From positions 885,848-949,847 of the forward strand of contig NW_005434659.1 in NCBI RefSeq assembly GCF_000315625.1: 64,000 nt of DNA, read 5' to 3'. The stretch's first letter is position 1. Every line of letters begins with the position of its first letter. This document shows, piece after piece, positions 29,205-35,712 of the stretch. This DNA comes from Guillardia theta CCMP2712. Its lineage: Eukaryota > Protista > Cryptophyta. The position numbers and the translations under genes were made by a program. The notes under the pieces are model-generated. The model was not told the origin of the DNA, searched no databases, and saw nothing but the letters and a program-made list of their open reading frames with translations.

Positions 29205-29609
29205 TAAATATAGACAGATGAGACTATGAAGCAACTACGGATCTGTTCAAGGGATCAAAGAGGAAGAAAATTGCTTGATGGTCTGTGTTGCCCTCTTTGC
29301 ATCTACATCCATCATCTTGTGGTGTTTTTGTATCGATGTCTTGTGTTTCTGTTTCCTTCTCCTGTTCGTCTCCTGTGTTCATCTTCCTTATTTCTGGACG
29401 TATTAATCCTCTCTCTCCTTCACTTCCCTTGTCTTTGATGTCATATCGTATTTCTGGTTCGTAGCTGCTTCCTTCCTCACTTCATCATCGAGTTCATCCG
29501 CTCCCTCACCTTCGTTCTGATCGCCTTAGTCCCCACGCCAATCTACTTCAACTTCTCATCGTCTCGCTTGTCTTCTGGTCCTCTCGTCTCTAAATCTCTA
29601 ATGCCCTGT

Positions 29610-29862
29610 CTTGATCTTCTCTTGATCTTCTCTTGATCTTCTCTTGATCTTCTCTTGATCTTCTCTTGATCTTCTCTTGATCTTCTCTTGATCTTCTCTT
29701 CTCTTGATCTTCTCTTGATCTTCTCTTGATCTTCTCTTCTCTTGATCTTCTCTTGATCTTCTCTTCTCTTGATCTTCTCTTGATCTTCTCTTGATCTTCT
29801 CTTGATCTTCTCTTGATCTTCTCTTGATCTTCTCTTGATCTTCTCTTGATCTTCTCTTCTCT
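29610..29862 (+). repeat. (CTTCTCTTGAT)n 11-mer minisatellite upstream of the rhodopsin gene
   Basis: About 21 units with occasional extra CTTCT. Confidence 0.95.
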
Positions 29863-29991
29863 CACCTCCTGACTTCAATCAGTTCCGTGCGGGTTTTTCG
29901 TTCGGCCTACACCTGTTGCACTCTACTACCCCTCCATTTGATATAATAATTTTGTCCAAGTGATGGGTGGGGTAGCAAGAAGGGAATTTTC

Positions 29992-32099
29992 ATGGCAGCT
30001 ACAGAAGGAGAGGGAGGGGGAGGGGCAAGAGGAAGAGGAGGAGAAGCGAGAGGCAGAGGAGGATGGAGAGGAAAGTGGAGTTTCAGACCATGCATGACGG
30101 CGAGTTTGATTTTGCTCGCCTCGCTGCATTTTGTGCAGAGTGAGTCGCATCGCGGTGGTGAGGATAATGGGCGGGGTGAAGGCGGGGTGAGGATGATGCC
30201 GCAAGAGGACGACGGGAACGATGATGGTTTCTTGCGATCCGTCAACACCTCGGTCATTGAAAACATCACCGTCGTGAACATCACCAATGTTGTCACCGAG
30301 TATGTTTCAAACCAGTCAACGAGCAACCTAGGGGAGGAGATCAACAGGTCACTCGAGGAGAGAAAACAAGAGCCGAGCTCCTCTGAACGTGTCCTTCAGG
30401 CTCATCTTTGCCATCAAACACCCGAGCTCCTTCTTTCAGCCCAGCGACATGGGTGCGGTGAAGGTTGTTGGTTGACAACCTGCTCACAACTATCTTGATA
30501 GACCCTCTGATAGTCAGAGTGCTCTGGTCCGGGTTTGTTCTCTTTCTCGTTGCATCGTTCATGATCGTGATTGACCGCCATCGGTACAAGATCAAGTACC
30601 AGGTCCTGTTCTCACTGTTGACGACTCTCTTCCCTCATGTGGACGACGCGGCAGGGTGATCACAACTTGCTGTTCTTGATGTTCATCACCACAACCCTCA
30701 CGTACATGACGATGGCCAACGGCCATGGTCGAGCTTACAAGTACGCCATCACAGGTGAGCTGGATATTTGAATCTCCCTCACGATGTTTCAATGCTCCTC
30801 TCAAGTTTTGGATCTTGGTCACCAAGTTGCATTCAATATTCCTGATGAGGTTGCTATGCAGAGGTGGACCCAAAGAATCTCACGCGAACATGTGTTGACA
30901 ACTCAACGAACGCGAGCTCAACGAATGTTGTTCCCCTTGCTCTTTGCTCTTGCTCTTGCTCTTGCTCTTTGCTCTTGCTCTTGCTCTTGCGCTTCCCCTT
31001 CCCCTTCCCCTTCCCCTTCCCCTTCCCCTTCCCCTTCCCCTTCCCCTTATCTGCGCGCATCTGGTTCTTCGAATTGAGCGTCTTCTTGCAATTGTAGACG
31101 ATCTTCAACACAGCTACAACTGGATCAAAGTTCGATTCTTGTCCTTCGGGAGACGTCAAGTACATTTGGATGTCAGCAGTGGCAAAGTTCGAGGTACAGG
31201 CGAGCAAGTAGCTTGCTACTCTCCTGATCCTCCTTTCAGATGGTCCCTTTCAATCCTCCCTTCTTCTATGCCAAATACGTGCAATGGATGATCTCTACCA
31301 ATATCACGCTCTACCTCCTCATCCGGTCAGTGGCCAAGGCGAACAAGAGAATCACCTTCCGTGTCATGGTAGCTCCTGCAGGAGGAGAGCTCGGGGCTGA
31401 GTCCCTCGCAGGCCTGCAACTCGCTGATGATTCTCAGCGGACTCTGTGCAGCCTCGATGAGGGTGGACGAGATCAGCACGCTGGATGTCCGCATGATCGT
31501 GAAGAGAAGGGAGCTGACGGGGCTGGCAGGCGCCGCGGTACATCACGTCTCGATGGATCTACTGGGTGTTTGGGATGATGTTCTACATCCTGCTGCTCAC
31601 AACCCTTAACAATGGCGTGCGATTGGCAGCAAACAGCCGGCAGACGCACGCAGAGAGGGGCAAGGTGTTCAATGAGGTGAGGGAGGGAGGAGGGCGAGCG
31701 GACGCGAATTGAACGCCCCACAGCTCTTCTTCATCATCTGTGTTGGGTGGTCCCTCTACCCGTTCGTCTGGGTCGTCACGGAGGGCGCTTACATCGTGAC
31801 CTTCACTACCAACGTCTACTCCTTCACTCTCCTCGATGTCGTGACCAAGTTCTCCTTCGCGGTGCAAGAGCAAGATTGCACTGTATGCTTGCTGAGTGAA
31901 CTGCAGGCTGTTTTCCTCATCCGGATACCGAAGAGGAAACATCAGAAGCTCCGTCATCCTGCGGTGAGTTTGCTGCACCTGCTGCAACCCACGTGACAAC
32001 CCAGGGCAGACTGAGAAGATTCAACAACTTCGCAACTTCTTCTCTAGGAGACATCATACCGCCGACAATGCCGATCCTCGAGATTCCTACAGAACATGA
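29992..32099 (+). CDS. Type-1 (microbial) rhodopsin with signal peptide, N-terminal ectodomain and enlarged B-C loop; 12 exons, about 426 aa from ATG 30094 (alternative in-frame ATG 29992)
   Basis: Exons 30094-30347, 30400-30452, 30502-30602, 30655-30754, 30862-30926, 31098-31193, 31240-31368, 31412-31462, 31530-31676, 31724-31861, 31907-31963, 32010-32099 are all GT-AG and sum to a multiple of 3. Helix B YMTMANGHG, helix C FYAKYVQWMISTN, helix D NSLMILSGL, helix E RWIYWVFG, helix F WSLYPFVWVVTEG, helix G LLDVVTKFSF (retinal Lys). Confidence 0.9.
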
Positions 32100-32620
32100 T
32101 GCACATGAAATTGAAGCAGTGAGATGTCGGTGTATAGACAGTCATCGTGTGTAAATATTCGTACATTTGTAAATGATTTGTTGTACCTTTGCACAAAGAA
32201 AGAACCATACAGAGAGTCGAGCACAACTGATTGTTCTGCATCACTTGTCCTCAGCGAGCCGTGCAACCTTCACTCTTCCAGTGCTTTCAACAGGGAACTA
32301 ACTTCCTTCAAGGAGTCACGCAGCCTGGCGCAGGGCTGGACTGGCACGGGTGCTCCATAATGGAGCGCATAGAGGTGGTAGCGATCTTCTTTCCCTTGCT
32401 GGCAGTGCTGGCAGCTGCATTCACGACATTGGCCGTATCTTCCATCCGTTGGATAACGTTCCTCTTGAAGGAATCGTCATTGAAGGCTGGCAGCAGAGGA
32501 GGCTGGGGCGTTCCCAGGAGCGATAGCTTGTCGAACATTGGAGGAGGAAAGAACTACACAGACTCGGTGTGAGAACAGGGATAGAGGGGATGAGCAGGAG
32601 CGGGAGCAGGAGAGGGAGAG

Positions 32621-33790: not shown

Positions 33791-35407
33791 TTACACTTGT
33801 GCGATCTGCGAAGCAGCTGCTTTTCTTCGTTGCACGATCGGAATAAACCTTGCAGCAATAGCTCTCATCAACCTTTCAAGCTTTTCTCTCCCCGCTTCAC
33901 TCTGCCTCAGCTTTGCGAACGTTTCAATCTGGGCAACAACACGTCTCAGCTCTGAAAACATGTAGTACGCGCAAAACATCACTGATCACCTCCATATCGA
34001 CTTGAAAATCGTTCATGAGCTCATTTGACGTCCTAAAGTCTCCCATCTCCCTTGCAAATGGCCTGCACATTTCAGGATTTTCCCTCTGAACACGATCAAA
34101 CTCCTCAGGTGAGACCTGCACAAACAAGAAACTTGAGAGGCGAGATGAAACGTGGCGAAGGGAAAGAGACAACAGCGAGGTGTGTTAGAGAGCGAAGGAA
34201 GCTAGGCAGTGGGAGGGAGGACGACAGGAGGGAGTATAACACTCACAGGGTTAAAGTAGTAGAGCTGATTCAGAACACGTCCTCGTCCGTCAAATTGACG
34301 GCATTGCGACAACTTGCAGAAGATGCAACCCTTTGGCTTCTCTGACCAAATATCCTTCACACGATAATAACGCTCTAGCAGGACATCGTTGGCGTGAAAG
34401 GCACCCTCAATCGTCTTGCAGAATTGATCCAACTCAGTCATGTAGAACGGAATGTCCTTTGCAGCAAATCGAGTCAGAAGCTCTTCTTTGTGCAATCCTG
34501 TCAGCTTGGTCATTGAATTTGTCACGCACACATCTTTCCTCCTTGACTCCTCAGGGTCGTATCTGATACGGACACAGGCAGAACCGTGAAGAGAAGAGAA
34601 ATTTTCCAGGGCACTAATCTCTGAGTCTTCACAATTGCTCAGATTGCTTGCATTGTCATTCTCAAGGAGGTGAATGTTATGCCTTGCAGTAGAAATCCCA
34701 TCATCCTTCAGCACAAACATGTTCTCCAGAAATCTTACTCCTTCCTTCAGCATATCTTGCAACTTTGGAGGCATCGTCAGAAACATCTTGAGGTTCTGGC
34801 TAGAGTTGAATCCGAACTCGTTGAATCTCTTAACCAGAGCAGTGGAACCAGTGAAGATACCCTCCAGGGCCTGACCACATTCAATCCCAAAGGAGGCGGT
34901 GTTGGCCTTGAAAGCCAGAGGTCGGTCCACTTGTTCTATAGGGCTCACACTCTTGTTGATTTCCGTGGGAGGACTTGGCACAGGCGACATCGGGCTCTGC
35001 TGATTGACTGGTGAATCCTTGGGCTGACTGGTGTCTTCATGAGAGGAGTCAACGCAAAGATGCGTTCTCCCTCTCTTACAACACCGTTTACAAGGCCTCT
35101 CATCGTCACATCTTTCCTTCAGCCGGCGGCATGGCTCGCAAGCCTTGGAAACCTGCTTCCTTGATTCTGGTTTATCCTTTGCCCAGTCAGTGCAAGTACT
35201 CGCTATGCCCCTGGCAAGGCAGCGACTGCAAGGCCGTGTGTTGTCACATTTTGTCTTCAGTCTCCTGCAATTTCCACATGCTCGTAACACACAAAAAGCA
35301 GATCTGTTCAACTTCTGGTTTGAGGAATTCTGTTTTACATCCGATGGTGATAGTTGTGATTCAATGTCCTGAGGTAAAAACTGACTCATGCTCCCAAACA
35401 GACTCAT
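33791..35407 (-). CDS. Transcription factor with two Zn(II)2Cys6 binuclear cluster domains
   Basis: [30 protein letters not shown] and [30 protein letters not shown], both fitting Cx2Cx6Cx5Cx2Cx8C. Short 3' exons run to ...SQIAQV*. Confidence 0.88.
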
Positions 35408-35712
35408 GCCAAGGAGCTCGACGACACTCGTTGCTGGATCATCTGCGCAGCACAAATTCAATTTCCTTCAAATAAACGGACAAGGTACAAGTTCCATCCA
35501 AAGCGTCAGAACAACACTTTTAGATCTCAGTTGCGGCAGTTCAAATTATTACATATTTCCCCCAGTGATCGAATATGTAAACAGCTTCACTGTCTCACTC
35601 ATTTTTGTAGCGAAAACCCTTTATTACGTCTGTTCACTCGGCTCAAATCTTCTTGCTCGATCATCCACTGCTTATACCCCTGCTTACCTCTCCACGTCCC
35701 ATTCCTCACTAA

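Follow-up and report, generated by a model that had tools for sequence, protein, structure and literature searches.

The stretch of Guillardia theta CCMP2712 DNA considered here (C15:885848–949847; 64,000 nucleotides, referred to below as the window) contains at positions 29992–32099, on the + strand, the complete coding region of GUITHDRAFT_151284, a single-copy, transcribed gene that encodes a type-1 rhodopsin of 468 amino acids. The protein belongs to a conserved family with an unusual set of residues in transmembrane helix C. Scans of the genome covered the 87.1-Mb, 669-contig assembly.

Gene structure and transcripts

The region has the character of eukaryotic DNA with short introns, and three-frame translation places rhodopsin-like helices in all three frames. 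Spliced transcript contigs from runs X1, X2 and X5 (three independent studies) map to 29992–32099; they begin at 29969–30002, reach the exon 1 joint (30347/30400), contain the stop codon and show zero base differences from the genome. The runs were labelled RNA by guess only, and the contigs are identified as transcripts because all introns are missing from them at canonical splice sites. Ten splice joints are present in these contigs, every one of them GT..AG. The eleventh intron to be defined (intron 5 in gene order, 30927–31097) is rich in microsatellites and was masked in the mapping; it was derived from the coordinates of the contig record, which place 68 nt between 30751 and 31098 and hence define exon 5, and its GT/AG boundaries were checked. 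All 11 introns begin with GT and end with AG (lengths 43–171 nt), and the last joint (intron 11) is also spanned by two raw RNA-seq reads from run X16. The resulting coding sequence is 1407 nt long, a single open frame that opens with the ATG at 29992 and closes with the TGA at 32097–32099. A first-pass annotation of this DNA had proposed 12 exons with precisely this start and end, and the transcripts from the three studies, together with the X16 reads, bear out that proposal. No further rhodopsin exons were found in the window.

The features of the gene are as follows (equivalent positions of bacteriorhodopsin, BR, are given where needed).

29992..30347 (+): exon 1, residues 1–118; Arg/Gly-rich n-region, signal peptide and start of the sequon-rich ectodomain (sequons NTS, NIT, NIT and NQS)
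30094..30141 (+): hydrophobic signal peptide, M35–S50, from hydropathy; within exon 1
30400..30452 (+): exon 2, residues 119–136; conserved juxtamembrane ectodomain segment LIFAIKHPSSFFQPSD
30502..30602 (+): exon 3, residues 137–170; helix A and conserved A–B loop DRHRYKIKYQ
30655..30754 (+): exon 4, residues 171–203; helix B, Y187 (BR Y57) and motif LTYMTMANGHGR
30862..30926 (+): exon 5, residues 204–225; first part of the B–C loop, EVDPKNLTRTC, C214, sequons NLT, NST and NAS
30927..31097 (+): intron 5, 171 nt; CTTGCT and CTTCCC hexamer microsatellites
31098..31193 (+): exon 6, residues 226–257; second part of the B–C loop, C240 and strand DVKYIWMSAVAKFE
31240..31368 (+): exon 7, residues 258–300; helix C; unique in the genome
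31273..31275, 31282..31284, 31300..31302 and 31315..31317 (+): codons of K269, Q272, N278 and L283, respectively, in exon 7
31412..31486 (+): exon 8, residues 301–325; helix D, with N303 (31418–31420) and Met kept at the BR M118 position, and start of the extended extracellular D–E loop
31530..31676 (+): exon 9, residues 326–374; R[YF]ITS[RK] motif, helix E, with Trp kept at the BR W138 position, and E–F loop
31724..31861 (+): exon 10, residues 375–420; helices F and G
31835..31837 and 31847..31849 (+): codons of D412 and of the Schiff-base lysine K416, in exon 10
31907..31963 (+): exon 11; encodes, together with exon 12, the end of helix G and a basic cytoplasmic tail of ~50 residues
32010..32099 (+): exon 12; last coding exon, with TGA (32097–32099)

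No domain was recognized in the C-terminal tail by Pfam, which gave nothing beyond PF01036.

Correction of the public gene model

The gene is catalogued as GUITHDRAFT_151284 (XM_005837266.1; 'Opsin' in UniRef), and the public protein (P0001; 263 residues) matches the window letter for letter. Its residues 21–263 are residues 226–468 of the corrected protein. The first 20 residues are artefactual, since the RefSeq model, which was rebuilt exactly, starts from an out-of-frame ATG in exon 4 (30725) and uses a false donor (30892); three transcript assemblies contradict this donor and use the one at 30927. As a result, neither the signal peptide nor the ectodomain is present in the model, and helices A and B (exon 3 is missing altogether) and half of the B–C loop are lost as well.

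Konno et al. (2020) reported that G. theta has 42 rhodopsin-like genes, of which 29 were amplified from mRNA (PMC7714340). Gt_151284 is included in this set with cloning and qPCR primers for XM_005837266.1 and no assigned function, and its entry in the S1 dataset is the exact sequence of helices C–G (PMC7714340). The forward primer begins at the false ATG (30725) and the reverse primer matches the last codons (PMC7714340); a construct made with the forward primer would therefore encode a five-helix fragment. Constructs derived from the public model, such as those using the PMC7714340 primers, would probably not give a functional protein. Other than PMC7714340, a literature search with the gene number 151284 returned only one unrelated paper, and a search for a rhodopsin family with the helix-C motif or the ectodomain of GUITHDRAFT_151284 found none. 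The gene had been called hidden in the first-pass annotation, which is apt for its 5' half, absent from the public model, but not for the gene as such, which was catalogued and for which primers had been designed. What was already known is thus a truncated catalogue entry with no function; neither the motif nor the family had been described. With the corrected 468-residue sequence the family can, for the first time, be put to the test.

Rhodopsin membership and residue mapping

Residues 226–468 match the Bac_rhodopsin profile (PF01036) with 77.1 bits against a cutoff of 24.6. The ortholog from Baffinella described below scores 75.8 bits over profile positions 8–218 of 224. With single exons as queries only exon 10 was significant (30.1 bits), the others being too short for the test to be informative about the remaining helices. 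A search of NCBIfam gave no relevant match, and a feature search of the ESM Atlas returned generic rhodopsin clusters only (0.88–0.90), with no family assignment.

Equivalent residues were read from HMMER alignments of exon 7 with BR, of exon 10 with BR and archaerhodopsin-2, and of residues 226–468 with the Haloquadratum walsbyi middle rhodopsin and archaerhodopsin-2. In helix C, K269, Q272, W273, S276, T277, N278 and L283 correspond to BR R82, D85, W86, T89, T90, P91 and D96; in helix D, N303 corresponds to D115; in helix F, W383, Y386, P387 and W390 correspond to W182, Y185, P186 and W189. E394 and N404 are the counterparts of E194 and E204, and D412 and K416 in helix G are those of D212 and the Schiff-base lysine K216. 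The retinal pocket and the Schiff-base lysine are thus intact, and the substitutions R82K, D85Q, T89S, P91N, D96L, D115N and E204N are all reproduced, as the first-pass annotation had read them. In generic numbering (PMC13739731) the key positions are K3.42, Q3.45, S3.49, T3.50, N3.51, L3.56, D7.46 and K7.50. Arg3.42 shows strong conservation in each characterized cluster except the pump-like channelrhodopsins (PMC13739731), which makes Lys269 unusual at this position.

The DTD pattern of BR-type pumps (Asp85, Asp/Glu96) is replaced by Q272 and L283, leaving D412 as the sole carboxylate next to the Schiff base. Conventional outward proton pumping is impossible by the established BR mechanism because there is no carboxylate at position 85 or 96, in agreement with what had been claimed from the sequence. 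Of the proton-release residues (Arg82, Glu194/Glu204), the first and last are replaced, by K269 and N404, and E394 is present. Cryptophyte BCCR/PLCR proteins have DTD or ETD in helix C, where QSL is found here. No transcript that restores DTD through another helix-C exon occurs among the mapped contigs, and there is no second genomic copy of this exon, as exon 7 matches only itself in its own genome. The Gln/Ser pair at positions 85 and 89 is chemically similar to the anion sites of halorhodopsin and NTQ pumps, although Lys stands at position 82 in place of their Arg. Helices A and B, hydrophobic in character, carry no acidic residues like those with which the pores of chlorophyte channelrhodopsins are lined. 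The residue pattern of HKR-type rhodopsins (PMC7693036) is present (Q272, S276, L283, D412), though not the fused kinase/receiver (± cyclase), as the protein stops ~50 residues past helix G.

A conserved family

The homology searches, the structure prediction and the atlas search were carried out on the public fragment (P0001:21–263), on single exons or on the Baffinella ortholog. Searches with the public fragment and then with a family profile identified a full-length protein of 439 residues from the cryptophyte Baffinella frigidus (P0004) and about eight distinct environmental proteins, all of which carry unnamed or hypothetical labels.

P0007/L038: Tara Oceans marine contig, 60% GC; gene nearly without introns
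P0003/L039, P0005, P0006 and P0008–P0011: JGI and ENA metagenome genes
P0012/L040: L040:4001-5320, ENA contig_21914, 72% GC; closest to the Baffinella gene
P0002/L037: Logan gene, unspliced; helix-C exon absent from its short contig

Identities of the full-length G. theta protein are 43% with P0004 (over 356 residues), 42% with P0007 (over 387 residues) and 47% with P0003 (over 346 residues). A search of 1.84 billion representatives with exon 10 returned only the gene itself and one unspliced relative, a 46-residue query of this kind being blind to distant kin.

The family has a shared architecture of a signal peptide, an ectodomain rich in N-glycosylation sequons, a Cys-bridged β-hairpin in the B–C loop and an extended D–E loop. 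A basic n-region is followed by the hydrophobic signal sequence, a variable Thr/Pro-rich stretch and the sequon-rich block ..IENITVVNIT..TEYV..SGGLD..L.RLV.AFKNP..FF, the '..IENITVVNIT..TEYV..' part of which (exon 1) is kept in every member; the exon 2 segment aligns with 'LV.AFKNP.QFF' of the relatives. Helix A leads into the A–B loop DR.RYK.KYQ..HN, and helix B terminates in L.MANGHGR. The B–C loop of 70–120 residues starts with VKPYNLTR.C (the counterpart of exon 5), continues with a variable, often acidic insert and ends in C..G.VKY, the Cys and 'G.VKY' of exon 6 being conserved, before a BR-like 'VP..PPFFY'. Helix C reads P[PT]FF[YW].KY.[QA]W.[IV][ST]TN..L[YF][LI]L and helix D reads NS[LM][MI]I..G; the extended D–E loop contains R[YF][IV]TS[RK]. 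Helices F and G carry WS[LI]YPF.W and [LI]D...K, respectively, and a basic C-terminal tail follows.

Lys82, Trp86, Thr90, Asn91, Leu96, Asn115, Asp212 and Lys216 (BR numbering) are invariant wherever the exon is available, and the retinal-pocket residues are kept in all members with the relevant exons. Position 85 is Gln except in L040, where Ala is found (..AKYVAW..) while K82, S-T-N and L96 are retained; position 89 is Ser or Thr. As the helix-C motif is invariant or almost so in relatives that are only 42–47% identical overall, it does not owe its existence to chance. The E194 and E204 positions, on the other hand, are variable, so that the Glu at the E194 position of the G. theta protein (E394), correctly noticed as retained, carries no weight.

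Two readings of the gene lose most of their ground at this point. A decaying or non-functional copy, or an annotation artefact, might be suspected of a genome singleton whose public model is truncated, but the gene is correctly spliced, is expressed in three studies and has an open frame of 468 codons, and its functional residues are conserved in the relatives at 42–47% identity; this reading is refuted for practical purposes. It is also highly improbable that the protein transports protons, outward or inward, with D412 or another group as the acceptor. Some rhodopsins without the DTD motif (xenorhodopsins, schizorhodopsins) do transport protons, D412 is conserved and a xenorhodopsin is among the weaker sequence matches, yet positions 85 and 96 both lack a carboxylate, the family does not conserve the E194/E204 release pair and helix C showed none of the motifs by which inward pumps are defined.

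Fold

AlphaFold2 (AF2) was used to model the Baffinella ortholog over P0004:60-415, after the termini had been removed and the alignment extended by nine rows of G. theta paralogs. The model has a predicted local distance difference test (pLDDT) value of 83 and a predicted template-modelling (pTM) value of 0.73. It shows seven long helices along with two short ones at the N terminus, and the B–C loop forms a β-hairpin of four segments. An earlier AF2 run, for which the complete ortholog and a family alignment of 14 rows were used, was discarded (pLDDT 52; fold matches with TM scores of 0.4–0.48). Foldseek matched the accepted model to BR, archaerhodopsins, SRII, fungal and algal pumps and a cyanobacterial halorhodopsin, with TM scores (by target) of 0.82–0.92, and there was no channelrhodopsin among its best 50 matches. 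The model thus indicates a seven-helix, BR/SRII-like fold for the family; in the G. theta protein helices A and B come from the transcript-confirmed exons 3 and 4 and are conserved in the family. The closest relatives of solved structure by sequence are the H. walsbyi middle rhodopsin (4.6e-18), archaerhodopsin-2 (4e-13) and BR (~1e-9).

The ortholog model predicts short helices for the exon 2 segment and long β-strands for the exon 6 part of the B–C loop; its ectodomain is modelled with moderate confidence (pLDDT 53–85). The conservation of the glycosylated ectodomain and of the B–C hairpin raises the question of whether the protein is mainly an extracellular receptor for a ligand, an ion or a cell-surface cue, in which retinal would have only a structural or modulatory part, or which would respond to the coincidence of light with an external cue. 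Among members only 42–47% identical, conservation extends to the IENITVVNIT..TEYV..SGGLD block, to the B–C loop's Cys pair and strands and to the D–E loop. The nearest paralog, Gt_148137, likewise has a Cys-rich ectodomain of ~235 residues and a long B–C loop, but a degenerate retinal pocket. We nevertheless consider such a receptor improbable: Pfam recognized no known ligand-binding domain in the ectodomain, the model of that region is of moderate quality, and the strict retention of the retinal pocket and of the D212 and K216 equivalents argues that photochemistry is under selection.

Phylogenetic position

A maximum-likelihood tree was calculated from 14 sequences (four family members and ten single-exon G. 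theta paralogs), a selection that left out ~30 intron-split paralogs and all foreign reference rhodopsins (BR, HR, SR and ChR). The family forms a clade with 100/100 support whose stem measures 1.38 changes per site. In the tree it falls on the same side as the DTD-type paralogs and apart from the HKR-type trio (L009, L010 and L013) and from L001 and L003, a pair that we take to be of the ACR type from its helix-G signature, 'C-K-N-T-Y-G'. The latter form a clade of their own (99/99) on the opposite side of the tree and are distant in sequence (19% identity, E = 0.026). The DTD-type paralogs L002 and L014 are a separate clade, and the family has no resolved sister in this tree. Within its own genome the gene is a singleton: the best paralog, L022, is 23% identical (E = 8e-11), and the best paralog match of the exon carrying helices F and G is 36% identical. 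The suggestion that the protein represents an uncharacterized clade is therefore upheld, given the unnamed relatives and a clade apart from the ACR-, HKR- and DTD-type paralogs of G. theta.

This position bears on an unlikely alternative, namely that the protein is a light-driven anion pump or a light-gated anion channel, with chloride or nitrate bound between Q272, S276 and K269 and moved after retinal isomerization. The amide at 85 and the hydroxyl at 89 would mimic the anion sites of NTQ pumps (Asn/Thr) and halorhodopsins (Thr/Ser), position 85 is a non-carboxylate throughout the family (Gln, or Ala in L040), and cyanobacterial halorhodopsins, that of Synechocystis included, are among the good sequence and fold matches. 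Anion-conducting rhodopsins (GtACRs) are, moreover, already present in G. theta (PMC7714340). The family nevertheless falls outside the ACR clade, and Lys takes the place of the Arg82 that all characterized anion pumps keep (compare Arg3.42 in PMC13739731), a mild argument against a classical anion pump. A channel is further disfavoured by the hydrophobic helices A and B, which offer no polar pore lining, and the Ala85 of one member would abolish the proposed amide ligand.

Proposed function

We tentatively favour the view that GUITHDRAFT_151284 encodes a photosensor that neither pumps nor otherwise transports ions and that is possibly anion-dependent; this view is drawn from the residue pattern. 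All-trans retinal would be bound at K416. With no acceptor at position 85 and no donor at position 96, light would be unable to drive vectorial proton transport of the BR type. The Schiff base would be balanced either by D412 alone or by D412 together with an anion held by Q272/S276 and K269, in a putative site that resembles those of NTQ chloride pumps (Asn/Thr) and halorhodopsin (Thr/Ser). A shifted absorption or a low Schiff-base pKa would be expected, possibly with long-lived or photochromic states. By analogy with HKR-type rhodopsins, which share Gln85, Ser/Thr89, a non-carboxylate at 96 and Asp212, a slow-cycling or photochromic sensory receptor is most likely. As there is no fused enzyme, the signal would have to reach separate partners by way of the conserved loops and tail on the cytoplasmic side, and perhaps also by way of the conserved extracellular face.

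Several points weigh against a photosensor. Retinal binding and signalling in the family are inferred from sequence, the protein has no fused output domain and no transducer has been identified. A neutral residue at 85 with a hydroxyl at 89 is equally a signature of anion pumps and of cryptophyte anion channels. Because the family lies outside the HKR cluster in the tree, the Gln85 likeness may be convergent and the photochemistry may differ. The structural model is of the Baffinella ortholog, which is 43% identical, and not of the G. theta protein itself. Finally, nothing like the elaborate extracellular face is known from sensory rhodopsins.

A bolder proposal, in our view a long shot in either of its forms, is that the family is a new class of eukaryotic rhodopsins that reports on light together with seawater chemistry or provides the missing phototaxis receptor of cryptophytes. 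In the first form it would be a plasma-membrane photoreceptor whose single-counterion Schiff-base site, lined by Gln, Ser and Lys, binds an external anion, and the glycosylated ectodomain and the disulfide-closed B–C hairpin would gate or sense access to this site (of nitrate or chloride, for example). In the second, the photoreceptor could signal through some transducer.

Optogenetic tools in wide use (GtACRs and BCCRs) come from G. theta, yet for most of its 42 rhodopsin genes no function is known. The conserved family defined by this gene combines three features that are not known to occur together in any characterized rhodopsin: Lys82, where Arg is almost universal; Gln85 with Asn91, in place of Asp and Pro; and a large conserved extracellular face. 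A single-counterion pigment, possibly anion-dependent or photochromic, would be of interest to photobiology and to tool development.

Flanking sequences and other genomic observations

An 11-bp microsatellite (TCTTGATCTTC, 23 copies) occupies 29609–29858, immediately upstream of the transcript start, and the two hexamer arrays (CTTGCT and CTTCCC) of intron 5 lie at 30936–31048. The X2 contig, the 5' end of which maps to 29969, carries 27 additional 5' letters that are absent throughout the 64-kb window; these may come from a far-off 5' exon, from trans-splicing or a chimeric end, or from faulty assembly. At the other end of the gene, another X2 transcript contig starts at 32144 and raw RNA reads of opposite orientation accumulate at 32168–32300; a neighbouring transcript probably overlaps or abuts the 3' untranslated region of the rhodopsin gene. 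The neighbouring open reading frames (ORFs) gave no functional link. The upstream ORF of 443 residues has no Pfam match, and an ORF of 419 residues at 34205–35461 (− strand) contains a Zn(2)-Cys(6) binuclear cluster domain of fungal type, matched by PF00172 with 38.9 bits. The nearly intron-free family gene of the marine contig L038 sits in a gene-dense setting beside lipin and triose-phosphate isomerase genes, whereas the G. theta gene has 11 introns. A search with this lipin gene, aimed at the taxon of the near-intronless marine relatives, returned environmental sequences only.

Elsewhere in the genome, L004–L008 are five near-identical copies of one rhodopsin exon (C38:270419 and 327426; C3:271928; C26:310696 and 311846). 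These copies, with an inverted pair ~800 bp apart on C26, point to recent duplications of that gene. The paralog L022 (L022:766-2220; G000:C191) is an intron-free ORF and a second rhodopsin of 'receptor-like' type in the genome.

Comparison with known systems

The haloarchaeal BR-type and SRII rhodopsins (BR, archaerhodopsin-2, H. walsbyi middle rhodopsin 9JWS and NpSRII) have the same retinal-pocket residues, D212 and K216 as the G. theta protein, and the 'MVPF..P..Y' start of the return strand of the B–C hairpin is common to both. The substitutions R82K, D85Q, P91N, D96L and D115N set the G. theta protein apart from them, as do ~140 additional N-terminal residues, a 55-residue B–C insertion, a longer D–E loop and a eukaryotic gene with 11 introns. 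The H. walsbyi middle rhodopsin has recently been described as a light-driven Mg2+ transporter (PMC12078690); it retains Asp85, where the G. theta protein has Gln.

Anion-transporting rhodopsins (halorhodopsins with TSA, cyanobacterial proteins with TSD or TSL, NTQ pumps and ACRs) resemble the protein in their neutral residue at 85, hydroxyl at 89 and Asp212, and the cyanobacterial halorhodopsins are decent sequence and fold matches to the family. Lys82, Asn91 and a position outside the ACR clade set the G. theta protein apart from them.

The nearest paralog in G. theta, L022, was identified as Gt_148137 by a primer match and is 23% identical over helices A–F. It shares a signal peptide, the Cys-rich ectodomain and long B–C loop mentioned above and a non-carboxylate (Ala) at 85. 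Unlike the family, it keeps R82 and P91 and has a degenerate helix-F pocket, where W182, Y185 and P186 are replaced by F, A and E, respectively; the two are not grouped with support in the tree.

The closest parallel in the residues around the Schiff base is with the HKR-type rhodopsins. Among 47 modular rhodopsins of green algae, 17 have Gln85, 43 have Ser or Thr at 89, only one has Asp96 and all but six have Asp212 (PMC7693036). Despite its lack of Asp85, Cop5/HKR1 responds to UV-A and blue light and is described as a bistable switch between the two, and the photochemistry of Ot-HKR varies with the salt concentration (PMC7693036). The HKR-like paralogs of G. theta itself (L009, L010, L013 and L030; G000:C84, C99 and C272) also have Gln at the D85 position, within F-F-x-Q-W-M-x-T-T-P or, in L030, R-Y-F-Q-W; Phe occupies the R82 position in three of the four. 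HKR-type rhodopsins and the G. theta protein thus agree in Gln85, Ser/Thr89, the lack of a carboxylate at 96, Asp212 and Lys216. They differ in that the G. theta protein has no fused kinase, receiver or cyclase, belongs to a separate clade and has S-T-N and Lys82 where the HKR-like paralogs have T-T-P and Phe. Helix C had been called non-standard in the first-pass annotation, and this is true of the combination of Lys82 and Asn91; for Gln85 there is precedent both in the green-algal survey (PMC7693036) and among the G. theta paralogs, and the pattern of Q85, S89, a non-carboxylate at 96 and D212 is accordingly one known from sensory rhodopsins. What is new here is the occurrence of that pattern together with Lys82 and Asn91, in a protein that has extracellular elaborations and no fused output domain.

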